From Neoechinorhynchus agilis (taxonomy: Eukaryota; Animalia; Acanthocephala): a DNA stretch of 64,000 bases. The stretch is taken from assembly GCA_051530055.1 (NCBI GenBank), contig CM121342.1, forward strand, positions 4,649,489 through 4,713,488. Direction: 5' to 3'. Shown here one piece after another: positions 4,232 to 60,775 of this stretch. The notes beneath the pieces were generated by a model. The model saw nothing but the letters and a program-made list of their open reading frames with translations, was not told the DNA's origin and made no database searches. The position numbers and the translations under genes were made by a program. How positions within the stretch are numbered: position 1 is the stretch's first letter; each line of letters starts with the position of its first letter.

Positions 4232-5116
4232 GAACGGCAGATCTCAGTTAGTTTCGATGGCTGTATCCGTCGATAGTTTCAATAAATAGTTTTTTGGCAT
4301 TCATTTGTAAAAAACTTTAGAACGGGTTTTTCGTGTTCTAAAATTCAATTTTGAAGCGATCGTTTTAAACACACACAAAGCCGTCCCAAATAAACGAAAT
4401 CTTATAAGCGGTTGCCCGCATTTCTCGATTGGTCGATTCAAATCACGAAACATCTCTCGATGCGACGCGGATCTGGAAGAATCGTCGCTGATTTCGTCAT
4501 ATTTCCCAAAGTTTGAAGTGAACGCAAATGGTCAAAAATAGCGTTCTTTGTGATTTACGGTGTTGTGGTCATTCTTTACGTCGTCCGCCCGCGCTCGCGA
4601 TGATTTGTTTATTTTCGACTGTCGTCCGTCAGAAATAGCGCCTTATCACTCTGTAAATTAGATCGATATTTCTCGATCGATGGCAATTCATTTTTTCCCA
4701 TTTCGACCAACACAACTTAAATTTCGCAATTCAGGTAAATCCAGAAAAATCTGATCAAATTCTTTGTTTATTATTTTCCTCCAGAGAATCAGAACCTTTT
4801 TAGCATCTCTCAACGCCTTTTTTGCGCGCTTTCGGAATTATTCCAAGAAACTTCGTTGAGAAATTTCCGTTAGAAAAATGTGAGTTTGCTTTTAATAAGA
4901 AATCAGCGAGTTAGCCGAAAAGTTTAGTGGGCGATGTGTCCAAATTTATCGTAAGAACATTACAAAACGGAATGACAGCAATGAAGAAAAAAACTTACGC
5001 AAATCATTCAAAAATGTGGCTAAAGCCGAAACATTGCGACTTCTACGAATGGATAAAATTGTTCTTTTCTTAGCAGTAAAGAGTTTACCGAGAAAAAAAC
5101 GGTGCAGAAGCGTTTC

Positions 5117-8100
5117 TTAGTTCAAAAGCTCATTTTCTCGGACGTCGACGAACTTTACGCATCTCTTCGCTCCTTTGTAGATTCCTGAACAAAACGTAAA
5201 ACGGCGAAAACTCTCGGGCAAATGAAGATTTTCTAGTTTTTATTTCGAAAACAAACTTTTTTCTAAAGACACGACGATTTCATTAGTTCAAAAGCTCATT
5301 TTCTCGGACGTCGACGAACTTTAGGCGTCTCTTCGCTCCTTTGTAGATTCCTGAACAAAACGTAAAACGGCGAAAACTCTCGGGCAAATGAAGATTTTCT
5401 AGTTTTTATTTTCAAAAACAAAACTTTTTTCTAAAGACACGACGATTTCATTAGTTCAAAAGCTCATTTTCTCGGACGTCGACGAACTTTAGGCGTCTCT
5501 TCGCTCCTTTGTAGATTCCTGAACAAAACGTAAAACGGCGAAAACTCTCGGGCAAATGAAGATTTTCTAGTTTTCATTTTTAAAAACAAAACTTTTTTCT
5601 AAAGACACGACGATTTCATTAGTTCAAAAGCTCATTTTCTCGGACGTCGACGAACTTTAGGCGTCTCTACGCTCCTTTGTAGATTCCTGAACAAAACGTA
5701 AAACGGCGAAAACTCTCGGGCAAATGAAGATTTTCTAGTTTTCATTTTGAAAAACAAAACTTTTTTCTAAAGACACGACGATTTCATTAGTTCAAAAGCT
5801 CATTTTCTCGGACGTCGACGAACTTTACGCATCTCTTCGCTCCTTTGTAGATTCCTGAACAAAACGTAAAACGGCGAAAACTCTCGGGTTAATAAAGATT
5901 TTTTAGTTTTTATTTTCGAAAACAAAACTTTTTTCTAAAGACACGACGATTTCATTAGTTCAAAAGCTCATTTTCTCGGACGTCGACGAACTTTAGGCGT
6001 CTCTTCGCTCCTTTGTAGATTCCTGAACAAAACGTAAAACGGCGAAAACTCTCGGTCAATTGAAGATTTTCTAGTTTTCATTTTTAAAAACAAAACTTTT
6101 TTCTAAAGACACGACGATTTCATTAGTTCAAAAGCTCATTTTCTCGGACGTCGACGAACTTTACGCATCTCTTCGCTCCTTTGTAGATTCCTGAACAATA
6201 CGTAAAACGGCGAAAACTCTCGGGCAAATAAAGATTTTTTAGTTTTCATTTTAAAAAAAACTTTTTTCTAAAGACACGACGATTTCATTAGTTCAAAAGC
6301 TCATTTTCTCGGACGTCGACGAACTTTACGCATCTCTTCGCTCCTTTGTAGATTCCTGAACGAAACGTAAAACGGCGAAAACTCGGGTTAATAAAGATTT
6401 TTTAGTTTTTATTTTCGAAAACAAAACTTTTTTCTAAAGACACGACGATTTCATTAGTTCAAAAGCTCATTTTCTCGGACGTCGACGAACTTTACGCGTC
6501 TCTTCGCTCCTTTGTAGATTCCTGAACAAAACGTAAAACGGCGAAAACTCTCGGTCAATTGAAGATTTTCTAGTTTTTATTTTCAAAAACAAAACTTTTT
6601 TCTAAAGACACGACGATTTCATTAGTTCAAAAGCTCATTTTCTCGGACGTCGACGAACTTTACGCGTCTCTTCGCTCCTTTGTAGATTCCTGAACAAAAC
6701 GTAAAACGGCGAAAACTCTCGGGCAAATGAAGATTTTCTAGTTTTTATTTTCAAAAACAAAACTTTTTTCTAAAGACACGACGATTTCATTAGTTCAAAA
6801 GCTCATTTTCTCGGACGTCGACGAACTTTACGCATCTCTACGCTCCTTTGTAGATTCCTGAACAAAACGTAAAACGGCGAAAACTCTCGGGCAAATGAAG
6901 ATTTTCTAGTTTTTATTTTGAAAAACAAAACTTTTTTCTAAAGACACGACGATTTCATTAGTTCAAAAGCTCATTTTCTCGGACGTCGACGAACTTTACG
7001 CATCTCCTGAACAAAACGTAAAACGGCCAAAGCTCTCGGGCAAATGAAGATTTCCTAGTTTTTATTTTCAAAAACAAAACTTTTTTCTAAAGACACGACG
7101 ATTTCATTAGTTCAAAAGCTCATTTTCTCGGACGTCGACGAACTTTAGGCGTCTCTACGCTCCTTTGTAGATTCCTGAACAAAACGTAAAACGGCGAAAA
7201 CTATCGGGTTAATAAAAAAATTTTAGTTTTTATTTTCGAAAACAAAACTTTTTTCTAAAGACACGACGATTTCATTAGTTCAAAAGCTCATTTTCTCGGA
7301 CGTCGACGAACTTTACGCATCTCTTCGCTCCTTTGTAGATTCCTGAACAAAACGTAAAACGGCGAAAACTCTCGGGTTAATAAAGATTTTTTAGTTTTTA
7401 TTTTCGAAAACAAAACTTTTTTCTAAAGACACGACGATTTCATTAGTTCAAAAGCTCATTTTCTCGGACGTCGACGAACTTTAGGCGTCTCTACGCTCCT
7501 TTGTAGATTCCTGAACAAAACGTAAAACGGCGAAAACTCTCGGGCAAATGAAGATTTTCTGGTTTTCATTTTTAAAAACAAAACTTTTTTCTAAAGACAC
7601 GACGATTTCATTAGTTCAAAAGCTCATTTTCTCGGACGTCGACGAACTTTACGCGTCTCTTCGCTCCTTTGTAGATTCCTGAACAAAACGTAAAACGGCG
7701 AAAACTCTCGGGCAAATGAAGATTTTCTAGTTTTCATTTTTAAAAACAAAACTTTTTTCTAAAGACACGACGATTTCATTAGTTCAAAAGCTCATTTTCT
7801 CGGACGTCGACGAACTTTACGCGTCTCTTCGCTCCTTTGTAGATTCCTGAACAAAACGTAAAACGGCGAAAACTCTCGGGCAAATGAAGATTTTCTAGTT
7901 TTTATTTTGAAAAACAAAACTTTTTTCTAAAGACACGACGATTTCATTAGTTCAAAAGCTCATTTTCTCGGACGTCGACGAACTCTACGCATCTCCTGAA
8001 CAAAATGTAAAACGGCCAAAGCTCTCGGGCAAATAAAGATTTTCTAGTTTTCATTTTAAAAAACAAAACTTTTTTCTAAAGACACGACGATTTCATTAGT

Positions 8101-8673
8101 TCAAGAGCTCATTTTCTCGGACGTCGACGAACTCTACGCATCTCCTGAACAAAATGTAAAACGGCCAAAGCTCTCGGGCAAATAAAGATTTTCTAGTTTT
8201 TATTTTCAAAAACAAAACTTTTTTCTAAAGACACGACGATTTCATTAGTTCAAAAGCTCATTTTCTCGGACGTCGACGAACTTTAGGCGTCTCTACGCTC
8301 CTTTGTAGATTCCTGAACAAAACGTAAAACGGCGAAAACTCTCGGGCAAATAAAGATTTTTTAGTTTTTATTTTGAAAAACAAAACTTTTTTCTAAAGAC
8401 ACGACGATTTCATTAGTTCAAAAGCTCATTTTCTCGGACGTCGACGAACTTTAGGCGTCTCTACGCTCCTTTGTAGATTCCTGAGCAAAACGTAAAACGG
8501 CGAAAACTCTCGCTCAATTGAAGATTTTCTAGTTTTCATTTTTAAAAACAAAACTTTTTTCTAAAGACACGACGATTTCATTAGTTCAAAAGCTCATTTT
8601 CTCGGACGTCGACGAACTTTACGCATCTCTACGCTCCTTTGCAGATTCCTGATGAAGACGTAAAACGGCGAAA
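5117..8673. repeat. Satellite A, ~168-bp unit, ~21 copies
   Basis: Unit starts TTAGTTCAAAAGCTCATTTTCTCGGACGTCGACG recur at 5283, 5451 and 5619 (168 spacing). Some units carry a 19-bp deletion. Confidence 0.97.
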
Positions 8674-8976
8674 ACAAAACTTGATTTGGCGTGGAAAGGC
8701 TTTATTTTTGCTATCACTGATGAGTCGTCTATGGGCGATTAGCGTCCTAAATATGATCGTTAAAAAGCATAGCCGCAAAAGGGATAATATTTGTTAGTTA
8801 ATTCGTTAAATTTCGACAAAAAGCTGTAATCCGTGACATTTGTCTTTAACGATTTATTTGTGAAGTCCCTGTAAGTCTTGAGAAACAAAAGAGTAGCTTC
8901 GATTTTGTGTTTTCAAGAAGCGGCTCTCATCCAAATAAATTGTAGTTTGTTTTTTATCTACAATTATATAAATCAT

Positions 8977-14718: not shown

Positions 14719-15432
14719 CTACTCGTCCTTATCTTTTGTATCTTCCAATTCATCCAAGAAAAATTCTCCGGTATTTAGCATATGACTAAGCCGATCGATT
14801 TCCTCGATCCCCTCAGCCTTATCGATTGCGCACCGTATTTGTTCCATTTGGTGAGCCGTCAATTTCAGTTTCTTCTCATCTCTCATCTCCTCGCCAACGC
14901 TATGATCGCGCTTCAAACTGGCACCTGAATTTGCCTTTTCTTCTTTAAAAAGAGCAGCAGCTTCTTGCCGTTCCCGTAGCGTCACTCTCTTAAAGTCCAG
15001 AACTCGAATTTGTGGCATTTTGTGAATGATATGAAGACGATAAGACTTGCTCATTGCAACCGGATTACGCATTAACGAAAGCATCCATAAGCACTTTAGA
15101 CCGAAAAGATGGTCGACTTCTTCGAGATCTTCAATGCTATTATTAGTCAGGATAAGAACCCGAAGATTCGGGATAGTCTCAGGAATGTCTCTCGATATCC
15201 GTTTTATTCGATTATTACTAAGGTAAAGCGATCTAAGCTTCGTCAATAAAGGAAATCCAGCCAATCGCTTGATTTCGTTGTCAGTCAGATCAATGGAATC
15301 GAACTGATTGAGAGTTGCGCCCAAATTCTCGATTACAGGAATACGGAGCCCTCGAATAATCAACTCATAATCCCCCACGGGGCTTATATGTTGAAGACTT
15401 TCCTGGATTAAATCGACCGTTAATCTGCCCAT
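14719..15432 (-). CDS. SNRPA1: U2 small nuclear ribonucleoprotein A' (intronless)
   Basis: MGRLTVDLIQES...YELIIRGLRIPVIENLGATLNQFDSIDLTDNEIKRLAGFPLL LRR series, LRR cap (NPVA....YRLHII..MPQIRVLDFKRV), and C-terminal IRCAIDKA..IEEIDRL..ML.TG. Confidence 0.97.
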   Translation of the reverse strand: MGRLTVDLIQESLQHISPVGDYELIIRGLRIPVIENLGATLNQFDSIDLTDNEIKRLAGFPLLTKLRSLYLSNNRIKRISRDIPETIPNLRVLILTNNSIEDLEEVDHLFGLKCLWMLSLMRNPVAMSKSYRLHIIHKMPQIRVLDFKRVTLRERQEAAALFKEEKANSGASLKRDHSVGEEMRDEKKLKLTAHQMEQIRCAIDKAEGIEEIDRLSHMLNTGEFFLDELEDTKDKDE

Positions 15433-15516
15433 TGCGTGATTGACTCATTTAAATCCAATCACTCGCGTCCGTAATAAATCTACGGAAGAATCACAGTTGC
15501 TGTCTATGGTATTTGT

Positions 15517-15702
15517 TTAATAAAGGAAATTCGACCAATCCCCTGATTTCGTGGTCAGATCAATGGGATCGAACTGATTGAGAGTTGCGCCCAAATTCTC
15601 GGTTACAGGAATACGGAGACCACGACTAATCAACTCATAATCTCCCACGGGGCTTATATGTTGAAGACTTTCCTGGATTAAATCGACCGTTAATCTGCCC
15701 AT
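15517..15702 (-). pseudogene. 5' partial duplicate of SNRPA1 (about codons 1-62, frameshifted)
   Basis: Near-identical to 15247-15432 but with a 4-nt deletion (CTGACTGAC to CTGAC) and premature stop. It is followed by the same ~85-bp spacer that precedes the intact gene. Confidence 0.9.
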
Positions 15703-15715
15703 TGCGTGATTGGCT

Positions 15716-18700
15716 TGTGGCGGCGACTTCTTTCACATGAATGACGGGCAGCCGTAAGAAGTTTCCTTTCGCCGAATGAAGGAAGGACAACACACATTTG
15801 ACCATTGTAGATAATAGTAAATATTTCGTCTTGATTACGTTTCGCCGTTAAATTGGTGACCCCGTCGAGACTGGCCTGGTCAGCGTCCTGACCAGGTCCA
15901 GCTGCCAGTACCACGCCGTCATCATACCAAGGTTCAACTCGGTTGCTCGACATCAGGCCCAGGGAAGCATCGTGACACGCGGACCTCCTTGCTCAACCCA
16001 ACAAGGAAGCGGCGTTCGCCAATGTCACCGATGCCTCGGGACTGGCAGTCGGCGCAGCCCACAAACAACGGAACAAAGACCACACCTGGCAGTTCTATCC
16101 TTTAGCAGGAAGCTTTACGATGCCGAGACGCGATAATCACCTTCAACAAGGTGCTTCAAACATGTCCTGGCACTTGAATCACCGATCCGGTGCTGCCCCC
16201 GGTACCTCCTCTCAAGCAACAGACGACTCGCTGCGGTCGTGGACGAAACGGATTGGTGCGGCGACACCGAGGGGAGGTATGTGGCGGCGACTTCTTTCAC
16301 ATGAATGACGGGCAGCCGTAAGAAGTTTCCTTTCGCCGTTGACCAATGTAGAAATAATAATAATAAATACTTCGTCTTGATTACGTGTCGCCGTTAAATT
16401 GGTGACCCCCGTCGAGACTGGCTGGTCAGCGTCCTGTCCAGGTCCAGCTGCCAGTACCACGCCGTCATCATACCGAGGAGTTCAACTCCCGGTTGCTCGA
16501 CATCAGGCCCAGGGAAGCATCGTGACACGCGGACCTCCTTGCTCAACCCAACAAGGAAGCAGCGTTCGCCAATGTCACCGATGCCTCGGGACTGGCAGTC
16601 GGCGCAGCCCACAAACAACGGAACAAAGACCACACCTGGCAGTTCTATCCTTTAGCAGGAAGCTTTACGATGCCGAGACGCGATAAAGCACCTTCAACAA
16701 GGTGCTTCAAACATGTCCTGGCACTTGAAATCACTGCCCGCGGCACTGTCAACAGACGACCACCAAAACGTTTTCAAGACACAATGCATTAGTGCGGCGA
16801 AACCGAGGAGAGGTAGATGGCGGCGACTTCTTTCACATGAATGACGGGCAGCCGTAAGAAGTTTCCTTTCGCCGAATGAAGGAAGGACAACACACATTTG
16901 ACCATTGTAGATAATAGTAAATATTTCGTCTTGATTACGTTTCGCCGTTAAATTGGTGACCCCGTCGAGACTGGCCTGGTCAGCGTCCCGATCAGGTCCA
17001 GCTGCCAGTACCACGCCGTCATCATACCAAGGTTCAACTCGGTTGCTCGACATCAGGCCCAGGGAAGCATCGTGACACGCGGACCTCCTTGCTCAACCCA
17101 ACAAGGAAGCAGCGTTCGCCAATGTCACCGATGCCTCGGGACTGGCAGTCGGCGCAGCCCACAAACAACGGAACAAAGACGGCACCTGGCAGTTCTATCC
17201 TTCAGCAGGAAGCTTTACGATGCCGAGACGCGATAATCACCTTCAACAAGGTGCTTCAAACATGTCCTGGCACTTGAATCACCGATCCGGTGCTGCCCCC
17301 GGTACCTCCTCTCAAGCAACAGACGACTCGCTGCGGTCGTGGACGAAACGGATTGGTGCGGCGACACCGAGGGGAGGTATGTGGCGGCGACTTCTTTCAC
17401 ATGAATGACGGGCAGCCGTAAGAAGTTTCCTTTCGCCGTTGACCAATGTAGAAATAATAATAATAAATACTTCGTCTTGATTACGTGTCGCCGTTAAATT
17501 GGTGACCCCGTCGAGACTGGCCTGGTCAGCGTCCTGACCAGGTCCAGCTGCCAGTACCACGCCGTCATCATACCGAGGTTCAACTCGGTTGCTCGACATC
17601 AGGCCCAGGGAAGCATCGTGACACGCGGACCTCCTTGCTCAACCCAACAAGGAAGCAGCGTTCGCCAATGTCACCGATGCCTCGGGACTGGCAGTCGGCG
17701 CAGCCCACAAACAACGGAACAAAGACGGCACCTGGCAGTTCTATCCTTCAGCAGGAAGCTTTACGATGCCGAGACGCGATAAAGCACCTTCAACAAGGTG
17801 CTTCAAACATGTCCTGGCACTTGAATCACCGATCCGGTGCTGCCCCCGGTACCTCCTCTCAAGCAACAGACGACTCGCTGCGGTCGTGGACGAAACGGAT
17901 TGGTGCGGCGACACCGAGGGGAGGTATGTGGCGGCGACTTCTTTCACATGAATGACGGGCAGCCGTAAGAAGTTTCCTTTCGCCGTTGACCAATGTAGAA
18001 ATAATAATAATAAATACTTCGTCTTGATTACGTGTCGCCGTTAAATTGGTGACCCCGTCGAGACTGGCCTGGTCAGCGTCCTGACCAGGTCCAGCTGCCA
18101 GTACCACGCCGTCATCATACCGAGGTTCAACTCGGTTGCTCGACATCAGGCCCAGGGAAGCATCGTGACACGCGGACCTCCTTGCTCAACCCAACAAGGA
18201 AGCAGCGTTCGCCAATGTCACCGATGCCTCGGGACTGGCAGTCGGCGCAGCCCACAAACAACGGAACAAAGACGGCACCTGGCAGTTCTATCCTTCAGCA
18301 GGAAGCTTTACGATGCCGAGACGCGATAATCACCTTCAACAAGGTGCTTCAAACATGTCCTGGCACTTGAATCACCGATCCGGTGCTGCCCCCGGTACCT
18401 CCTCTCAAGCAACAGACGACTCGCTGCGGTCGTGGACGAAACGGATTGGTGCGGCGACACCGAGGGGAGGTATGTGGCGGCGACTTCTTTCACATGAATG
18501 ACGGGCAGCCGTAAGAAGTTTCCTTTCGCCGTTGACCAATGTAGAAATAATAATAATAAATACTTCGTCTTGATTACGTGTCGCCGTTAAATTGGTGACC
18601 CCGTCGAGACGGCCTGGTCAGCGTCCTGACCAGGTCCAGCTGGTACCACGCCGTCATCATACCGAGGTTCAACTCGGTTGCTCGACATCAGGCCCAGGGA

Positions 18701-20427
18701 AGCATCGTGCACGCGGACCTCCTTGCTCAACCCAACAAGGAAGCAGCGTTCGCCAATGTCACCGATGCCGGGACTGGCAGTCGGCGCAGCCCACAAACAA
18801 CGGAACAAAGACGGCACCTGGCAGTTCTATCCTTCAGCAGGAAGCTTTACGATGCCGAGACGCGATAAAGCACCTTCAACAAGGTGCTTCAAACATGTCC
18901 TGGCACTTGAATCACCGATCCGGTGCTGCCCCCGGTACCTCCTCTCAAGCAACAGACGACTCGCTGCGGTCGTGGACGAAACGGATTGGTGCGGCGACAC
19001 CGAGGGGAGGTATGTGGCGGCGACTTCTTTCACATGAATGACGGGCAGCCGTAAGAAGTTTCCTTTCGCCGTTGACCAATGTAGAAATAATAATAATAAA
19101 TACTTCGTCTTGATTACGTGTCGCCGTTAAATTGGTGACCCCGTCGAGACTGGCCTGGTCAGCGTCCTGACCAGGTCCAGCTGCCAGTACCACGCCGTCA
19201 TCATACCGAGGTTCAACTCGGTTGCTCGACATCAGGCCCAGGGAAGCATCGTGACACGCGGACCTCCTTGCTCAACCCAACAAGGAAGCAGCGTTCGCCA
19301 ATGTCACCGATGCCTCGGGACTGGCAGTCGGCGCAGCCCACAAACAACGGAACAAAGACGGCACCTGGCAGTTCTATCCTTCAGCAGGAAGCTTTACGAT
19401 GCCGAGACGCGATAATCACCTTCAACAAGGTGCTTCAAACATGTCCTGGCACTTGAAATCACTGCCCGCGGCACTGTCAACAGACGACCACCAAAACGTT
19501 TTCAAGACACAATGCATTAGTGCGGCGAAACCGAGGAGAGGTATATGGCGGCGACTTCTTTCACATGAATGACGGGCAGCCGTAAGAAGTTTCCTTTCGC
19601 CGAATGAAGGAAGGACAACACACATTTGACCATTGTAGATAATAGTAAATATTTCGTCTTGATTACGTTTCGCCGTTAAATTGGTGACCCCGTCGAGACT
19701 GGCCTGGTCAGCGTCCCGATCAGGTCCAGCTGCCAGTACCACGCCGTCATCATACCAAGGTTCAACTCGGTTGCTCGACATCAGGCCCAGGGAAGCATCG
19801 TGACACGCGGACCTCCTTGCTCAACCCAACAAGGAAGCAGCGTTCGCCAATGTCACCGATGCCTCGGGACTGGCAGTCGGCGCAGCCCACAAACAACGGA
19901 ACAAAGACGGCACCTGGCAGTTCTATCCTTCAGCAGGAAGCTTTACGATGCCGAGACGCGATAATCACCTTCAACAAGGTGCTTCAAACATGTCCTGGCA
20001 CTTGAATCACCGATCCGGTGCTGCCCCCGGTACCTCCTCTCAAGCAACAGACGACTCGCTGCGGTCGTGGACGAAACGGATTGGTGCGGCGACACCGAGG
20101 GGAGGTATGTCACCTGGCAGTTCTATCCTTCAGCAGGAAGCTTTACGATGCCGAGACGCGATAAAGCACCTTCAACAAGGTGCTTCAAACATGTCCTGGC
20201 ACTTGAATCACCGATCCGGTGCTGCCCCCGGTACCTCCTCTCAAGCAACAGACGACTCGCTGCGGTCGTGGACGAAACGGATTGGTGCGGCGACACCGAG
20301 GGGAGGTATGTGGCGGCGACTTCTTTCACATGAATGACGGGCAGCCGTAAGAAGTTTCCTTTCGCCGTTGACCAATGTAGAAATAATAATAATAAATACT
20401 TCGTCTTGATTACGTGTCGCCGCTAAA
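15716..20427 (+). mobile_element. Tandem array of a non-autonomous miniature LTR retrotransposon (TRIM) derived from Ty3/Gypsy; 9 LTRs, ~547-bp period
   Basis: LTRs start TGTGGCGGCGAC (GA/TA variants) at 15716, 16280, 16816, 17380, 17927, 18473, 19013, 19544 and 20309, and end GTCGCCG(T/C)TAAA. Each internal LTR is followed by PBS TGGTGACCCCG; each LTR after the first is preceded by PPT GAGG(G/A)GAGG. GGCT flanks both ends (15712-15715, 20428-20431), and the empty-site sequence is visible at 15433-15455. The internal region encodes a relic LLAQPNKEAAFANVTDASGLAVGAA..Q..KDGTWQ / LSFSRKLYDAETR*STFNK, typical of Ty3/Gypsy RNase H. Confidence 0.92.
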
Positions 20428-20431
20428 GGCT

Positions 20432-20613
20432 CATTTGAATCCAATCGGTCGCGTCCGTAATAAATCTACGGAAGATTCGCAGTTACCGTCTTTGGTGTTT
20501 GTTTAATAAAGGAAATTCGGCCAATCGCTTGATTTCGTGGTCAGTTCAATGGACTCGAACTGATTGAGAGTTGCGCCCAAATTCTCGGTTACAGGAAAAC
20601 GGAGCCCACGAAT
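20432..20613 (-). pseudogene. Third SNRPA1 fragment (about codons 27-62) plus spacer
   Basis: 20505-20613 matches SNRPA1 (GLRFPVTENLGATLNQFESIELT) with the same 4-nt deletion as copy 2. 20432-20504 matches the spacer at 15445-15516. Confidence 0.88.
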
Positions 20614-40605: not shown

Positions 40606-42010
40606 GACGAACTTTACGCATCTCTACGCTCCTTTGTAGATTCCTGAACAAAACGTAAAACGGCGAAAACTCTCGGGTAAATGAAGATTTTCTAGTTTTT
40701 ATTTTCGAAAACAAAACTTTTTTCTAAAGACACGACGATTTCATTAGTTCAAAAGCTCATTTTCTCGGACGTCGACGAACTTTACGCGTCTCTTCGCTCC
40801 TTTGTAGATTCCTGAACAAAACGTAAAACGGCGAAAACTCTCGGGCAAATAAAGATTTTCTAGTTTTTATTTTGAAAAACAAAACTTTTTTCTAAAGACA
40901 CGACGATTTCATTAGTTCAAAAGCTCATTTTCTCGGACGTCGACGAACTTTACGCGTCTCTTCGCTCCTTTGTAGATTCCTGAACAAAACGTAAAACGGC
41001 GAAAACTCTCGGGCAAATGAAGATTTTCTAGTTTTTATTTTCGAAAACAAAACTTTTTTCTAAAGACACGACGATTTCATTAGTTCAAAAGCTCATTTTC
41101 TCGGACGTCGACGAACTTTAGGCGTCTCTTCGCTCCTTTGTAGATTCCTGAACAAAACGTAAAACGGCGAAAACTCTCGGGCAAATGAAGATTTTCTAGT
41201 TTTTATTTTGAAAAACAAAACTTTTTTCTAAAGACACGACGATTTCATTAGTTCAAAAGCTCATTTTCTCGGACGTCGACGAACTTTACGCGTCTCTTCG
41301 CTCCTTTGTAGATTCCTGAACAAAACGTAAAACGGCGAAAACTCTCGGGCAAATAAAGATTTTCTAGTTTTTATTTTCGAAAACAAAACTTTTTTCTAAA
41401 GACACGACGATTTCATTAGTTCAAAAGCTCATTTTCTCGGACGTCGACGAACTTTACGCGTCTCTTCGCTCCTTTGTAGATTCCTGAACAAAACGTAAAA
41501 CGGCGAAAACTCTCGGGCAAATGAAGATTTTCTAGTTTTTATTTTGAAAAACAAAACTTTTTTCTAAAGACACGACGATTTCATTAGTTCAAAAGCTCAT
41601 TTTCTCGGACGTCGACGAACTTTACGCGTCTCTTCGCTCCTTTGTAGATTCCTGAACAAAACGTTAAACGGCGAAAACTCTCGGGCAAATAAAGATTTTC
41701 TAGTTTTTATTTTGAAAAACAAAACTTTTTTCTAAAGACACGACGATTTCATTAGTTCAAAAGCTCATTTTCTCGGACGTCGACGAACTTTAGGCGTCTC
41801 TTCGCTCCTTTGTAGATTCCTGAACAAAACGTAAAACGGCGAAAACTCTCGGGCAAATGAAGATTTTCTAGTTTTTATTTTCAAAAACAAAACTTTTTTC
41901 TAAAGACACGACGATTTCATTAGTTCAAAAGCTCATTTTCTCGGACGTCGACGAACTTTACGCGTCACCTGAACAAAACGTTAAACGGCGAAAACTCTCG
42001 GGCAAATAAA
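40606..42010. repeat. Satellite A, second locus (~8 copies, same orientation)
   Basis: Same 168-bp unit as 5117-8673 but starting and ending at different phases, with unrelated flanks. Confidence 0.97.
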
Positions 42011-52044: not shown

Positions 52045-52867
52045 CTGAGCTAAGAAGGGGTAATGGTCCGTGTAATTGGGAATCGGACAAATGATTTGCC
52101 GTCTAAACTTTTCAATTTAAAGAAAAGTCTTCCTATTTTAGTCAAAGTAAAAATTCGTAGGTACAAAATGGATAGGTAAATGTCCATCAAAATCTCGTTT
52201 CTTGGATAGAATAGACACTATGGGCACAATTGCAAGAGAGTGATACGCTTGAGAAGTTATATATAATGGTTTCGTCATGTCGAGAGATATTGTCAGTTGT
52301 CCGGTGGATTTGAGACAAGGAAATTCAGGTAAAATCGAAGTCTACTTACGGATTTGTGGGTTTCGATGGTCACATGATTCAACTTGGAAATTAGATTAAT
52401 TTAGAACACTGTGTTTCTGAGTTAACGAGCTGCAAAATATGATCTCTGAAGGACGATCTCGCTATGTTCTGATTAAAGAAGTTGAGAAGAATGCGGGGAC
52501 TATCGGAATGAAAGGGATTGTGAGCTTGGACGACGAATAGTTCTTGACAAGTTTTCGAAGGTCCAGTTTCCAGTAATTATTTTTGAAACTTTGATCATCG
52601 AAAACTTTATTTGTTCCTTTCATGAAGATCTTTGATAAAATGTTTTTCGACTTAATTAAAACCAACGATTGAACTTTTCTACATGCCTCGGCATTGATTT
52701 TTCGCGAATCGAAGTTGCAATGTTAAGCGACCGTGCGAATATCTCAAATTTTAATTAGATCGGTTTAATCGTTTATCGTGACAAATAGCTTTTTAGATCC
52801 AATTGAATGCGTTCAAATTTCTGTGATTGGTATTACCCGGGAATTGGATCAAAACACCCTGGTGTCA

Positions 52868-55781
52868 ATCAAGGTCATTGAACACTGCGACAATTGAGAA
52901 AGATCGTTTTGTACTTGGTAAATTTGAGCCGGACGAATGGATTAATGGCGGGTTTTCATGGTATTCCCGATGCCATGAGTTTTATCCGTTTATTATTGAG
53001 GAGATAACCGTCGTGAAGTCTTAAAGTCCGAATTATCGAAACTTTATGGTTTCAGAAATGTCGATCAAGGTCATTGAACACTGCGACAATTGAGAAAGAT
53101 CGTTTTGTACTTGGTAAATTTGAGCCGGACGAATGGATTAATGGCGGGTTTTCATGGTATTCTCGATGCCATGAGTTTTATCCGTTTATTATTGAGGAGA
53201 TAACCGTCGTGAAGTCTTAAAGTCCGAATTATCGAAACTTTATGGTTTCAGAAATGTCGATCAAGGTCATTGAACACTGCGACAATTGAGAAAGATCGTT
53301 TTGTACTTGGTAAATTTGAGCCGGACGAATGGATTAATGGCGGGTTTTCATGGTATTCTCGATGCCATGAGTTTTATCCGTTTATTATTGAGGAGATAAC
53401 CGTCGTGAAGTCTTAAAGTCCGAATTATCGAAACTTTATGGTTTCAGAAATGTCGATCAAGGTCATTGAACACTGCGACAATTGAGAAAGATCGTTTTGT
53501 ACTTGGTAAATTTGAGTCGGACGAATGGATTAATGGCGGGTTTTCATGGTATTCCCGATGCCATGAGTTTTATCCGTTTATTATTGAGGAGATAACCGTC
53601 GTGAAGTCTTAAAGTCCGAATTATCGAAACTTTATGGTTTCAGAAATGTCGATCAAGGTCATTGAACACTGCGACAATTGAGAAAGATCGTTTTGTACTT
53701 GGTAAATTTGAGTCGGACGAATGGATTAATGGCGGGTTTTCATGGTATTTTGATGCCATGAGTTTTATCCGTTTATTATTGAGGAGATAACCGTCGTGAA
53801 GTCTTAAAGTCCGAATTATCGAAACTTTATGGTTTCAGAAATGTCGATCAAGGTCATTGAACACTGCGACAATTGAGAAAGATCGTTTTGTACTTGGTAA
53901 ATTTGAGCCGGACGAATGGATTAATGGCGGGTTTTCATGGTATTCCCGATGCCATGAGTTTTATCCGTTTATTATTGAGGAGATAACCGTCGTGAAGTCT
54001 TAAAGTCCGAATTATCGAAACTTTATGGTTTCAGAAATGTCGATCAAGGTCATTGAACACTGCGACAATTGAGAAAGATCGTTTTGTACTTGGTAAATTT
54101 GAGCCGGACGAATGGATTAATGGCGGGTTTTCATGGTATTCCCGATGCCATGAGTTTTATCCGTTTATTATTGAGGAGATAACCGTCGTGAAGTCTTAAA
54201 GTCCGAATTATCGAAACTTTATGGTTTCAGAAATGTCGATCAAGGTCATTGAACACTGCGACAATTGAGAAAGATCGTTTTGTACTTGGTAAATTTGAGT
54301 CGGACGAATGGATTAATGGCGGGTTTTCATGGTATTCCCGATGCCATGAGTTTTATCCGTTTATTATTGAGGAGATAACCGTCGTGAAGTCTTAAAGTCC
54401 GAATTATCGAAACTTTATGGTTTCAGAAATGTCGATCAAGGTCATTGAACACTGCGACAATTGAGAAAGATCGTTTTGTACTTGGTAAATTTGAGTCGGA
54501 CGAATGGATTAATGGCGGGTTTTCATGGTATTCCCGATGCCATGAGTTTTATCCGTTTATTATTGAGGAGATAACCGTCGTGAAGTCTTAAAGTCCGAAT
54601 TATCGAAACTTTATGGTTTCAGAAATGTCGATCAAGGTCATTGAACACTGCGACAATTGAGAAAGATCGTTTTGTACTTGGTAAATTTGAGCCGGACGAA
54701 TGGATTAATGGCGGGTTTTCATGGTATTCCCGATGCCATGAGTTTTATCCGTTTATTATTGAGGAGATAACCGTCGTGAAGTCTTAAAGTCCGAATTATC
54801 GAAACTTTATGGTTTCAGAAATGTCGATCAAGGTCATTGAACACTGCGACAATTGAGAAAGATCGTTTTGTACTTGGTAAATTTGAGTCGGACGAATGGA
54901 TTAATGGCGGGTTTTCATGGTATTCCCGATGCCATGAGTTTTATCCGTTTATTATTGAGGAGATAACCGTCGTGAAGTCTTAAAGTCCGAATTATCGAAA
55001 CTATGGTTTCAGAAATGTCGATCAAGGTCATTGAACACTGCGACAATTGAGAAAGATCGTTTTGTACTTGGTAAATTTGAGCCGGACGAATGGATTAATG
55101 GCGGGTTTTCATGGTATTCCCGATGCCATGAGTTTTATCCGTTTATTATTGAGGAGATAACCGTCGTGAAGTCTTAAAGTCCGAATTATCGAAACTTTAT
55201 GGTTTCAGAAATGTCGATCAAGGTCATTGAACACTGCGACAATTGAGAAAGATCGTTTTGTACTTGGTAAATTTGAGCCGGACGAATGGATTAATGGCGG
55301 GTTTTCATGGTATTCCCGATGCCATGAGTTTTATCCGTTTATTATTGAAGAGATAACCGTCGTGAAGTCTTAAAGTCCGAATTATCGAAACTTTATGGTT
55401 TCAGAAATGTCGATCAAGGTCATTGAACACTGCGACAATTGAGAAAGATCGTTTTGTACTTGGTAAATTTGAGTCGGACGAATGGATTAATGGCGGGTCA
55501 TGGTATTCTCGATGCCATGAGTTTTATCCGTTTATTATTGAGGAGATAACCGTCGTGAAGTCTTAAAGTCCGAATTATCGAAACTTTATGGTTTCAGAAA
55601 TGTCGATCAAGGTCATTGAACACTGCGACAATTGAGAAAGATCGTTTTGTACTTGGTAAATTTGAGCCGGACGAATGAATTAATGGCGGGTTTTCATGGT
55701 ATTCCCGATGCCATGAGTTTTATCCGTTTATTATTGAGGAGATAACCGTCGGGAGGTCTTAAAGTCCGAATTATCGAAACT
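52868..55781. repeat. Satellite J, 196-bp unit, ~15 highly homogeneous copies
   Basis: TCAAGGTCATTGAACAC at 52869, 53065 and 53261. Confidence 0.97.
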
Positions 55782-57080: not shown

Positions 57081-60000
57081 AAGAAAATCCTTTAGGACGT
57101 GGTGACCATAATCCTTATCCTAATTTCCGATTATTTCACACTAAACAATCACCAGCCTACAGGAAAGCTTGAAATGTTTAAAATTAAGAAGGTGTACTTT
57201 TCACCCCACTTATTCGAAGAACCGAAAACACAATCCGAGAAGGGACGAGGATCACTTCAAGAAAATCCTTTAGGACGTGGTGACCATAATCCTTATCCTA
57301 ATTTCCGATTATTTCACACCAAACAATCACCAGCCTACAGGAAAGGTTGAAATGTTTAAAATTAAGAAGGTGTACTTTTCATTGGTGGGGGTGAAAATCC
57401 TTTGGACGTGGTGACCATAATCCTTATCCTAATTTCCGATTATTTCACACCAAACAATCACCAGCCCACAGGAAGCTTGAAATGTTTAAAATTAAGAAGG
57501 TGTACTTTTCACCCCACTTATTCGAAGAACCGAAAACACAGTCCGAGAAGGGACGAGGATCACTTCAAGAAAATCCTTTAGGACGTGGTGACCATAATCC
57601 TTATCCTAATTTCCGATTATTTCACACCAAACAATCACCAGCCTACAGGAAAGGTTGAAATGTTTAAAATTAAGAAGGTGAACTTTTCACCCCACTTATT
57701 CGAAGAACCGAAAACACAGTCCGAGAAGGGACGAGGATCACTTCAAGAAAATCCTTTAGGACGTGGTGACCATAATCCTTATCCTAATTTCCGATTATTT
57801 CACACCAAACAATCACCAGCCTACAGGAAAGCTTGAAATGTTTAAAATTAAGAAGGTGAACTTTTCACCCCACTTATTCGAAGAACCGAAAACACAGTCC
57901 GAGAAGGGACGAGGATCACTTCAAGAAAATCCTTTAGGACGTGGTGACCATAATCCTTATCCTAATTTCCGATTATTTCACACCAAACAATCACCAGCCT
58001 ACAGGAAAGGTTGAAATGTTTAAAATTAAGAAGGTGTACTTTCACCCCACTTATTCGAAGAACCGAAAACACAATCCGAGAAGGGACGAGGATCACTTCA
58101 AGAAAATCCTTTAGGACGTGGTGACCATAATCCTTATCCTAATTTCCGATTATTTCACACCAAACAATCACCAGCCCACAGGAAAGGTTGAAATGTTTAA
58201 AATTAAGAAGGTGTACTTTTCACCCCACTTATTCGAAGAACCGAAAACACAATCCGAGAAGGGACGAGGATCACTTCAAGAAAATCCTTTAGGACGTGGT
58301 GACCATAATCCTTATCCTAATTTCCGATTATTTCACACCAAACAATCACCAGCCCACAGGAAAGGTTGAAATGTTTAAAATTAAGAAGGTGTACTTTTCA
58401 CCCCACTTATTCGAAGAACCGAAAACACAGTCCGAGAAGGGACGAGGATCACTTCAAGAAAATCCTTTAGGACGTGGTGACCATAATCCTTATCCTAATT
58501 TCCGATTATTTCACACCAAACAATCACCAGCCTACAGGAAAGGTTGAAATGTTTAAAATTAAGAAGGTGTACTTTTCACCCCACTTATTCGAAGAACCGA
58601 AAACACAGTCCGAGAAGGGACGAGGATCACTTCAAGAAAATCCTTTAGGACGTGGTGACCATAATCCTTATCCTAATTTCCGATTATTTCACACCAAACA
58701 ATCACCAGCCTACAGGAAAGGTTGAAATGTTTAAAATTAAGAAGGTGTACTTTTCACCCCACTTATTCGAAGAACCGAAAACACAGTCCGAGAAGGGACG
58801 AGGATCACTTCAAGAAAATCCTTTAGGACGTGGTGACCATAATCCTTATCCTAATTTCCGATTATTTCACACCAAACAATCACCAGCCTACAGGAAAGGT
58901 TGAAATGTTTAAAATTAAGAAGGTGTACTTTTCACCCCACTTATTCGAAGAACCGAAAACACAGTCCGAGAAGGGACGAGGATCACTTCAAGAAAATCCT
59001 TTAGGACGTGGTGACCATAATCCTTATCCTAATTTCCGATTATTTCACACCAAACAATCACCAGCCTACAGGAAAGGTTGAAATGTTTAAAATTAAGAAG
59101 GTGTACTTTTCACCCCACTTATTCGAAGAACCGAAAACACAGTCCGAGAAGGGACGAGGATCACTTCAAGAAAATCCTTTAGGACGTGGTGACCATAATC
59201 CTTATCCTAATTTCCGATTATTTCACACCAAACAATCACCAGCCCACAGGAAAGGTTGAAATGTTTAAAATTAAGAAGGTGAACTTTTCACCCCACTTAT
59301 TCGAAGAACCGAAAACACAATCCGAGAAGGGACGAGGATCACTTCAAGAAAATCCTTTAGGACGTGGTGACCATAATCCTTATCCTAATTTCCGATTATT
59401 TCACACCAAACAATCACCAGCCCACAGGAAAGGTTGAAATGTTTAAAATTAAGAAGGTGTACTTTTCACCCCATTATTCGAAGAACCGAAAACACAATCC
59501 GAGAAGGGACGAGGATCACTTCAAGAAAATCCTTTAGGACGTGGTGACCATAATCCTTATCCTAATTTCCGATTATTTCACACCAAACAATCACCAGCCT
59601 ACAGGAAAGGTTGAAATGTTTAAAATTAAGAAGGTGTACTTTTCACCCCACTTATTCGAAGAACCGAAAACACAATCCGAGAAGGGACGAGGATCACTTC
59701 AAGAAAATCCTTTAGGACGTGGTGACCATAATCCTTATCCTAATTTCCGATTATTTCACACCAAACAATCACCAGCCTACAGGAAAGGTTGAAATGTTTA
59801 AAATTAAGAAGGTGTACTTTTCACCCCACTTATTCGAAGAACCGAAAACACAATCCGAGAAGGGACGAGGATCACTTCAAGAAAATCCTTTAGGACGTGG
59901 TGACCATAATCCTTATCCTAATTTCCGATTATTTCACACCAAACAATCACCAGCCTACAGGAAAGGTTGAAATGTTTAAAATTAAGAAGGTGTACTTTTC

Positions 60001-60775
60001 ACCCCACTTATTCGAAGAACCGAAAACACAGTCCGAGAAGGGACGAGGATCACTTCAAGAAAATCCTTTAGGACGTGGTGACCATAATCCTTATCCTAAT
60101 TTCCGATTATTTCACACCAAACAATCACCAGCCTACAGGAAAGGTTGAAATGTTTAAAATTAAGAAGGTGTACTTTTCACCCCACTTATTCGAAGAACGA
60201 AAACACAGTCCGAGAAGGGACGAGGATCACTTCAAGAAAATCCTTTAGGACGTGGTGACCATAATCCTTATCCTAATTTCCGATTATTTCACACCAAACA
60301 ATCACCAGCCCACAGGAAAGGTTGAAATGTTTAAAATTAAGAAGGTGTACTTTTCACCCCACTTATTCGAAGAACCGAAAACACAGTCCGAGAAGGGACG
60401 AGGATCACTTCAAGAAAATCCTTTAGGACGTGGTGACCATAATCCTTATCCTAATTTCCGATTATTTCACACCAAACAATCACCAGCCCACAGGAAAGCT
60501 TGAAATGTTTAAAATTAAGAAGGTGAATTTTCACCCCACTTATTCGAAGAACCGAAAACACAGTCCGAGAAGGGACGAGGATCACTTCAAGAAAATCCTT
60601 TAGGACGTGGTGACCATAATCCTTATCCTAATTTCCGATTATTTCACACCAAACAATCACCAGCCTACAGGAAAGCTTGAAATGTTTAAAATTAAGAAGG
60701 TGTACTTTTCACCCCACTTATTCGAAGAACCGAAAACACAGTCCGAGAAGGGACGAGGATCACTTCAAGAAAATC
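57081..60775. repeat. Satellite K, 178-bp unit, ~21 copies
   Basis: GAAAATCCTTTAGGACGTGGTGACC repeats; the ORF track shows 178-bp periodicity. Confidence 0.97.

Follow-up and report, generated by a model that had tools for sequence, protein, structure and literature searches.

The 64-kb window of contig CM121342.1 (assembly GCA_051530055.1, Neoechinorhynchus agilis) analyzed here, to which all coordinates refer, contains the gene for the U2A' protein and, next to it, an array of what appears to be a miniature terminal-repeat retrotransposon (TRIM). The array occupies 4.7 kb on the + strand (15716-20427) and consists of nine long terminal repeats (LTRs) arranged head to tail with eight full internal regions and one partial internal region, without any LTR-LTR junction (Table 1). 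A 56-nt core of the LTR has nine exact copies in the window, all of them within the array and on the + strand, where none would be expected by chance. The LTRs are of two types, namely type b (137 bp, containing GAATGAAGGAAGGACAACACAC) and type a (119 bp, carrying an AAT run), and these follow one another in the order b a b a a a a b (deletion) a; with internal regions of 412-428 bp, a basic element, made up of a pair of LTRs plus a single internal region, measures approximately 665-700 bp. An earlier, sequence-only reading of this DNA had proposed both LTR types, their lengths, the three positions of type b, and six further positions for type a, and all of these were reproduced by the core count and by delimitation of the LTRs, the 3' edges of which were set by the downstream TTGGTGACCCC. 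The eight internal regions of that reading were likewise recovered as full copies, to which must be added a partial one and, where a 346-bp deletion occurred, the remaining stump of a tenth LTR. The G+C content of the array is 54%, compared to 36% for the rest of the window; its observed-to-expected CpG ratio is 1.08 (1.35 elsewhere), with no sign of CpG depletion.

Table 1. Coordinates of the TRIM array, its target site, and the adjacent U2A' sequences (I, internal region; ORF, open reading frame; PBS, primer-binding site; PPT, polypurine tract; TSD, target-site duplication).
Feature	Position	Strand	Details
U2A' gene	14719-15432	-	
Host 270-bp tandem duplication	15284-15715, continuing 20432-20611	-	U2A' 5' end and upstream region
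Duplicate U2A' ORF	15517-15702	-	Pfam LRR_9
Left TSD copy	15712-15715	+	GGCT
LTR1	15716-15852	+	type b, 137 bp; starts TGT like type a, may be an a/b chimera
I1	15853-16279	+	PBS-like TGGTGACCCCGTCGAGAC 15854-15871; b-linked leader marker A at 15919; tail A; PPT GAGGGGAGG 16269-16277
LTR2	16280-16398	+	type a, 119 bp
I2	16399-16815	+	tail B from 16727; 88-codon frame 16526-16789; several private indels
B-block 1	16727-17029	+	tail B, LTR3, leader to b-linked marker 17029
LTR3	16816-16952	+	type b
I3	16953-17379	+	b-type leader, tail A
a-type units	17380-19131	+	LTR4 to LTR7
LTR4	17380-17498	+	type a
I4	17499-17926	+	
LTR5	17927-18045	+	type a
I5	18046-18472	+	
LTR6	18473-18591	+	type a
I6	18592-19012	+	private deletions
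LTR7	19013-19131	+	type a
I7	19132-19543	+	a-type leader, tail B from 19455
B-block 2	19455-19757	+	tail B, LTR8, leader to marker 19757
LTR8	19544-19680	+	type b
I8a	19681-20107	+	b-type leader, tail A
Stump of tenth LTR	20108-20110	+	TGT, 3 bp, at junction of 346-bp deletion
Partial internal region	20111-20308	+	3' 198 bp; AAAGC variant, tail A
LTR9	20309-20427	+	type a, terminal; T>C at 20423
Right TSD copy	20428-20431	+	GGCT

The two LTR types are identical over their first 59 bp and last 11 bp, and are otherwise distinguished by four substitutions and two indels, one of 23 bp and one of 5 bp that lies in the AAT run. Within each type, only three point differences separate the copies, located at the first base of LTR3, at LTR position 2 (G in LTR1, A in LTR3 and LTR8), and near the 3' end of LTR9 (Table 1). 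LTR1 and all type a LTRs start with TGT, and the internal type b LTRs start with GAT or TAT; all nine end in GTTAAA (e.g., at 15849-15852 and 20424-20427), the canonical CA being missing. The outer LTRs are thus unequal, with the 137-bp type b at the 5' end and the 119-bp type a at the 3' end, separated by the two indels and four substitutions as well as the private change in LTR9. Each LTR is followed by a PBS-like TGGTGACCCCGTCGAGAC after a single T, which lies between the LTR end and the TGG of the putative PBS, and every LTR with an upstream internal region is preceded by a PPT (GAGGGGAGG or GAGGAGAGG) and then TA, 2 nt ahead of the LTR. Two 3' ends of the internal region, or tails, can be distinguished, which are approximately 40% divergent and differ by two further indels: tail B, reading ...RGTVNRRPPKRFQDTMH to a stop and then PPT GAGGAGAGG, precedes both internal type b LTRs, and tail A, with PPT GAGGGGAGG, precedes every type a LTR that has an upstream internal region. 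The coupling of tail to LTR type, which had also been claimed from the sequence alone, therefore holds for both internal b LTRs and for every scorable a LTR. Just 3' of the PBS lies a 9-bp perfect inverted repeat, CCTGGTCAG-CGTC-CTGACCAGG (15895-15904, with equivalents in each unit), which is broken by a CT variant in the internal b-type leaders of units 3 and 8. Type a carries a canonical AATAAA at LTR position 83 (17462-17467), and the type b equivalent is AGTAAA at position 101 (16916-16921); judging from these motifs, the two types might differ in polyadenylation or read-through.

The array was inserted into a host duplication with a 270-bp period, present in approximately 2.27 copies of 91-96% identity, which carries the first ~50 codons and the upstream region of U2A'; the insertion point lies 10 bp upstream of the ATG of the duplicate U2A' ORF. 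This duplication could be real, or it could be a false duplication of two alleles. When the two flanks were joined (15554-15715 and the sequence from 20432, with one GGCT kept), they aligned gap-free over 342 bp to the paralogous copy at 15284-15625, in which the empty site, gattgACTcattt at about 15437, reads GACT where the TSD is GGCT. This gap-free alignment makes the array boundary exact, so the GGCT boundary given in the sequence-only reading stands and an alternative true boundary is not supported; its further observation that the outer LTRs are b (5') and a (3') despite a clean TSD is likewise confirmed. Taken together, the exact TSD and the empty-site alignment indicate that this locus received an LTR 5' end and an LTR 3' end in one integrase-type event. 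Both outer LTRs abut unique flank sequence. Nested independent insertions were ruled out, as the units share single LTRs without internal TSDs.

The internal structure of the array was examined by counting units from one LTR to the next and scoring each at LTR position 2, LTR type, four sets of alignment columns in the internal region and one further column (220), and the tail (Table 2). Sequence specific to type b always forms one contiguous block centered on an LTR, comprising tail B, LTR b, and a b-type leader of ~80 bp, and the same is seen in truncated form at the left edge of the array (15775-15919). The tail type agrees with the type of the next LTR at all seven scorable junctions, and column 220 agrees with the preceding LTR type in all eight scorable units; two b LTRs never lie next to each other, and in no internal region are both ends b-type. 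The b blocks sit in otherwise almost identical units, which are 547 bp in length and more than 98% identical. Units other than U2 and U6 show no private indel-type differences.

Table 2. Markers scored in each unit of the array (empty cells, marker not scorable).
Unit	LTR position 2	LTR type	Columns 180/183	Column 220	Columns 376-377	Column 398	Columns 430/433	Tail
U1	G	b	TC	A	CA	T	AATC	A
U2	G	a	TC	G	CA	T	AAAGC	B
U3	A	b	CT	A	GG	C	AATC	A
U4	G	a	TC	G	GG	C	AAAGC	A
U5	G	a	TC	G	GG	C	AATC	A
U6	G	a	TC	G	GG	C	AAAGC	A
U7	G	a	TC	G	GG	C	AATC	B
U8	A	b	CT	A	GG	C	AATC	A
Partial U9						C	AAAGC	A
Terminal LTR9	G	a						

Three pairs of markers violate the four-gamete condition, namely LTR type against columns 376-377, columns 376-398 against 430/433, and 430/433 against tail type. 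These violations require at least three recombination breakpoints, all of which fall within a central region of ~250 bp that is nearly identical in all units. The alignment and crossover mapping that the sequence-only reading had suggested thus places every breakpoint in shared sequence, and contiguous b blocks are the expected product of recombination with end points in such sequence. In addition, the AATC/AAAGC marker alternates strictly over the first six units, which reveals a two-unit register. These results support the description of the array as a recombinant mosaic, and the near-identity of the LTRs within each type suggests that it is either young or homogenised.

Further rearrangement is evident in the 3' part of the array. 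The segment 16727-18045 (tail B, LTR3, I3, LTR4, I4, and LTR5) aligns to 19455-20427 (tail B, LTR8, I8a, the partial internal region, and LTR9) with two mismatches and one 346-bp gap, so that the last 973 bp of the array are a repeat of a 1.3-kb internal segment; over the 330 bp upstream of these near-identical segments, by comparison, there are five site differences and five indels. The gap reflects a 346-bp deletion at 20107/20111, equivalent to 17383-17728, which took 116 of the 119 bp of an LTR together with 230 bp of the next internal region, and the junction (GGTATGT/CACCTGG at 20110/20111) shows no microhomology. Given the LTR stump left by this deletion, the array once had ten LTRs. 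A fresh 201-bp tandem duplication at 19911-20311, which Tandem Repeats Finder (TRF) reports as a 201-bp repeat in two copies, was ruled out: the same segment also aligns to 16727-18045 as a 346-bp deletion, and the deletion fits better because the two copies differ at AATC/AAAGC as neighboring units do.

Tandem repetition is common around the array. Approximately 42% of the window consists of tandem arrays with periods of 111-348 bp, among ordinary genes, including those at 5113-8675, 40606-41966, 52863-55781, and 57083-60775, and a 168-bp satellite is present at two separate loci (5113-8675 and 40606-41966). With this proportion of tandem arrays, and with a 270-bp duplication as the target itself, the locus lies in a setting prone to tandem duplication.

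The element shows several of the features by which TRIMs are defined. Its LTRs, at 119 and 137 bp, lie within the range of ~100-250 bp for TRIM terminal repeats, and the basic element is smaller than 1 kb; the 4-bp GGCT, confirmed by the empty site, lies within the 4-6 bp of TRIM TSDs, a PPT precedes the LTR, and there is no gag or pol coding capacity, only a frameshifted RNase H remnant. The array also has the composition of a tandemly arrayed TRIM (TA-TRIM), with three or more LTRs and two or more internal regions that share single LTRs within one TSD. Of the canonical LTR termini, 5'-TG...CA-3', the TG is present at the outer LTR and in all type a LTRs, and the 3' end is AAA; the resulting 5'-TGT...AAA-3' is a non-canonical terminus that is not disqualifying for a TRIM.

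The internal region is non-coding, with one frame reading ...LLAQPNKEAAFANVTDASGLAVGAAHKQRNKDGTWQ and, after a frameshift, LSFSRKLYDAETR.STFNK. When stitched, these frames match Pfam RT_RNaseH_2 above the curated cut-off (E=7e-9, 36 bits, profile positions 17-79). Taken singly, without stitching, they reach 18-19 bits over positions 17-57 and stay below that cut-off, and no other Pfam domain was found in the internal region. Unit 2 has an 88-codon frame (16526-16789) that links the RNase H remnant to ...RGTVNRRPPKRFQDTMH and closes with a stop 24 bp before LTR3. The match to RT_RNaseH_2 supports an ancestry in the pol of an LTR retroelement and is better evidence for it than the short tail peptide RRPPKRF, which the sequence-only reading had called Gypsy-like and which bears only a resemblance to Ty3/gypsy pol. 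Judging from this remnant, the element derives from a pol-bearing LTR retroelement by internal deletion, and its size fits the definition of a TRIM. In a candidate autonomous parent, NRRPPKRFQDTMH would be the pol end to look for, so that its 3' end can be compared with tail B. No tRNA genes are present within the window, TGGTGACCCCGTCGAGAC is a candidate PBS, and there is no match to any Rfam family. A Cassandra-like or small-RNA-derived LTR was ruled out by the lack of Rfam matches and tRNA genes. An element on the minus strand was also ruled out, the + strand being the one on which the PBS-like sequence, the PPT, the RNase H remnant, and the pol-like tail read.

Searches for other copies or for a parent element covered the window as well as protein and metagenome collections. 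Within the 64 kb, sensitive blastn searches with both unit types returned only chance matches of at most 34 bp to the sequence outside the array. Protein searches with the translation of the stitched RNase H remnant plus tail, or with the concatenated long ORFs of the array, gave no match and found no related pol protein; an exact look-up of two ORFs spanning tail, LTR, and leader found none recorded, a sequence search of the PDB gave chance matches only, and neither the LTR core nor the RNase H-coding stretch had an exact DNA match in the metagenome contigs scanned. A HMMER search of 1.84 billion representative proteins returned two matches, one of which (P0122) is a bacterial repeat protein that was rejected as spurious, having matched on a low-complexity DGTW motif; the other (P0121), a protein of 5963 aa with nine repeated short stretches, was not evaluated as a relative. 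The term "two subfamilies" is thus to be read as a suggestion from this single array.

We consider it somewhat probable that homologous recombination after insertion, through unequal exchange combined with conversion by or exchange with a b-type donor, explains the mosaic. From the observations above we infer the order of events, the original LTR type, and the nature of the donor as follows. A single integrase-mediated insertion of a miniature non-autonomous element (LTR 119 bp, internal region ~427 bp), most likely with two type a LTRs (a-I-a), would have occurred in the region upstream of the duplicated 5' end of U2A' and generated the GGCT TSD. Unequal exchange between sister chromatids or homologues, within the LTRs and the shared internal sequence, would then have multiplied the unit to at least ten LTRs, with part of this growth in a two-unit register, and the insertion would have come to behave like a young satellite. 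One block of tail B, LTR b, and ~80 bp of leader may have entered by homologous recombination with end points in the ~250-bp shared center, its donor being either a genomic copy (by gene conversion) or an extrachromosomal cDNA or one-LTR circle. Segmental duplication would subsequently have copied this block within the array and conversion would have carried it to the 5' outer LTR, and the 346-bp deletion would later have removed one LTR. Only the 5' outer LTR is plausibly convertible, because a and b share 59 bp at its outer edge, within which recombination could anneal, compared to 11 bp at the 3' edge, and the fact that this LTR is type b while keeping an a-type TGT start fits the conversion of a type a LTR. 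Moreover, the near-perfect segmental copy within the array and the two-unit periodicity indicate that much of the structure arose after insertion.

Several points weigh against such a history. Neither a b-type donor nor any other copy of either type was found in the window or in the protein and metagenome collections, which leaves the donor hypothetical. The suggested chimeric nature of LTR1 hangs on one nucleotide (G instead of A at position 2), a difference that one mutation in the common ancestor of LTR3 and LTR8 would account for as well. The leader of LTR1 has TC at columns 180/183, as opposed to CT in the internal b blocks, so a simple copy of LTR3 onto LTR1 needs an extra step. The history further needs roughly six or more events, has no unique reconstruction, and depends on the unit order given by the assembly. 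There is also a small chance that the b blocks are the footprints of integrase-independent spread, in which TRIM cDNA (a one-LTR circle or a linear form) recombines into a resident copy of the other variant. If so, each event would add a whole LTR-plus-internal unit and seed an array, possibly building a mixed multimer before integration, and TRIM arrays in this animal would grow partly by cDNA recombination rather than solely by unequal crossing-over.

Alternatives to recombination after insertion differ mainly in how they deal with the unequal outer LTRs. One cycle of reverse transcription copies the same U3-R-U5 to both ends. Likewise, the template-switch model for complex LTR elements keeps the two outermost LTRs identical (PMC1950507). 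Reverse transcription, including template switching, thus predicts identical outer LTRs and cannot explain the b/a mismatch. The scheme of Sabot and Schulman, in which switching between co-packaged a and b RNAs would yield an element with at least three LTRs that integrated once and then expanded, is consistent with a TSD that encloses a multi-LTR complex, and the first three LTRs (b-a-b) match the predicted L3I2 complex with like outer and different middle LTRs. However, that scheme also predicts a U3/U5-chimeric middle LTR followed by the leader of the other RNA, whereas only pure a and b LTRs are present and each leader matches the preceding LTR. It would also still require further recombination after insertion, and we regard it as very unlikely. 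Retrotransposition as a unit of a pre-existing mixed array, transcribed elsewhere through its internal LTRs, meets a similar difficulty, as its reverse transcription (with U3 taken from the 3' end and U5 from the 5' end) would give identical and possibly chimeric outer LTRs, neither of which is seen, and no second array was found in the window or in the protein and metagenome collections. Retrotransposition of multi-LTR Cassandra after inter-element recombination has been proposed (PMC4079214), and the AGTAAA of LTR b in place of the AATAAA of LTR a might favor read-through, yet such an origin appears extremely unlikely here. Integration of a 2-LTR circle junction is excluded by the lack of any LTR-LTR junction in the array, and a Devos-type inter-element recombinant, which would have no shared TSD and would take its ends from independent insertions, is contradicted by the exact TSD and the empty site. 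The recombinant origin proposed in the sequence-only reading is therefore retained as far as the mosaic is concerned, on account of the four-gamete violations and the segmental copy, and two of the causes it had offered, template switching and a circle junction, are not.

Unequal outer LTRs and the lack of an LTR-LTR junction leave a route in which DNA forms recombined homologously, whether this took place after integration or, before it, among cDNAs. In the latter case, linear a- and b-type cDNAs would have recombined into a concatemer with LTR b at its start and LTR a at its end, which was integrated once and later modified by exchange and deletion. This would account directly for unequal outer LTRs with a clean GGCT TSD, and U1 (LTR b, b leader, tail A, then LTR a) is the exact product of one crossover between a b and an a cDNA; in yeast, homologous recombination is described as promoting Ty1 cDNA multimers, which integrate (PMC7524711 and references there). 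Such a concatemer nevertheless requires both types to be active and co-expressed at once, and it adds a rare step while sparing none of the common post-insertion ones, such as the segmental copy and the two-unit periodicity. To our knowledge, there is no documented case of this process for TRIMs or in animals, and we consider it an unlikely origin of the array. An artefact of assembly, with near-identical 547-bp units misordered or alleles or loci merged, also has to be weighed. It would be favored by the identity of more than 98% between units, by the private differences of U2 (16280-16815) and U6 (18473-19012), which comprise approximately 10 indels against one substitution and resemble long-read consensus error, and by the flanking 270-bp duplicate (91-96% identity), which could be a false allele duplication. 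Yet a 4.7-kb array in a 16.4-Mb contig of a chromosome-scale assembly is easily spanned by single long reads, both outer LTRs adjoin unique flank, and the differences between a and b, among them a 23-bp indel and a tail with ~40% divergence, are large and perfectly phased into blocks, which an assembler would not invent; an artefact is accordingly improbable. Recombination after insertion, for all its hypothetical donor, remains the reading that we favor.

Tandem arrays of TRIMs have been described in several lineages, and the present array is best seen as a well-documented example of a known process rather than a new mechanism. In plants, TA-TRIMs with one flanking TSD are common (129 subfamilies in 35 genomes; PMC4717578) and are attributed to frequent unequal crossing-over (PMC4717578; PMC4528315), with maize Wukong, for example, reaching 6-7 LTRs (PMC4528315). 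The N. agilis array resembles plant TA-TRIMs such as Zma-SMART and Wukong in its LxI(x-1) structure with single shared LTRs, its small LTRs, the PBS-like sequence and PPT at every internal LTR, and one TSD, but differs in its animal host, in having nine LTRs and a deleted tenth compared to the usual L3I2, in its two interleaved variants and unequal outer LTRs, in the RNase H remnant that it keeps, and in LTRs ending in AAA instead of CA. Pear Cassandra elements, which have 3-5 LTRs and mostly carry TSDs, and for which frequent inter-element recombination was invoked and template switching discussed (PMC4079214), are alike in being multi-LTR elements with TSDs; their LTRs carry a 5S rRNA-like segment, however, and their TSD-less recombinants were proposed to retrotranspose later and thereby equalize the outer LTRs, which here are unequal. 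Among animals, the ta-TRIM of taeniid tapeworms has 4-bp TSDs, and the clustering of its tandem copies with one another has been put down to unequal crossing-over (PMC4558846), and the biv-TRIM arrays of bivalves extend to TDR58_I57, with differences between repeats ascribed to inter-element recombination (PMC6934838). The likeness to these two, including the 4-bp TSD of ta-TRIM, is one of structure, no sequence relationship having been tested for or found, and what the present array adds is a base-level crossover map inside one TSD-bounded array. The template-switch complexes Angela, Opie, and Squiq (Sabot and Schulman, 2007; PMC1950507) also have several LTRs and internal regions in one TSD. 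Unlike those complexes, the array shows no similarity of the outermost LTRs and has no U3/U5-chimeric middle LTR. The members of yeast Ty1 arrays, by contrast, are full-length autonomous elements in a fungal host. According to the work cited above (PMC7524711), the multimeric arrays are alike in being tandem, LTR-sharing elements that arise via homologous recombination involving cDNA. What is particular to the N. agilis array is that two clearly different LTR/tail variants interleave within one TSD, that its outer LTRs are unequal, and that it has both an RNase H remnant and a non-canonical 3' LTR end.

The genes around the array form a metazoan set, including those for a canonical armadillo-repeat protein that ends in WFDTDL, a member of the Bcl-2 family, an asparaginase, and a protein with an arrestin domain. 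The database proteins nearest to the U2A' protein are approximately 50% identical and belong to assorted spiralians and vertebrates, and the protein forms a singleton cluster. An ORF of 135 aa on the - strand (1204-1611), which we take to resemble the C-terminal region of a non-LTR retrotransposon ORF2, has no Pfam match at E<=0.001.

Known tandem arrays of TRIMs come mainly from plants, and their descriptions usually give LTR counts only; a base-level map of crossovers shows in addition that recombination end points avoid the divergent tail-LTR-leader block and that the array has been evolving, as a young satellite does, with a two-unit periodicity. A mismatch of the outer LTRs does not have to imply two insertions or an exotic reverse-transcription event, and both LTR-divergence dating and annotation based on LTR pairs would misread a locus of this kind. 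If pure a and b families were confirmed genome-wide, the array would provide a tidy case of how a transposable element turns into a satellite, in a compact and very satellite-rich animal genome.

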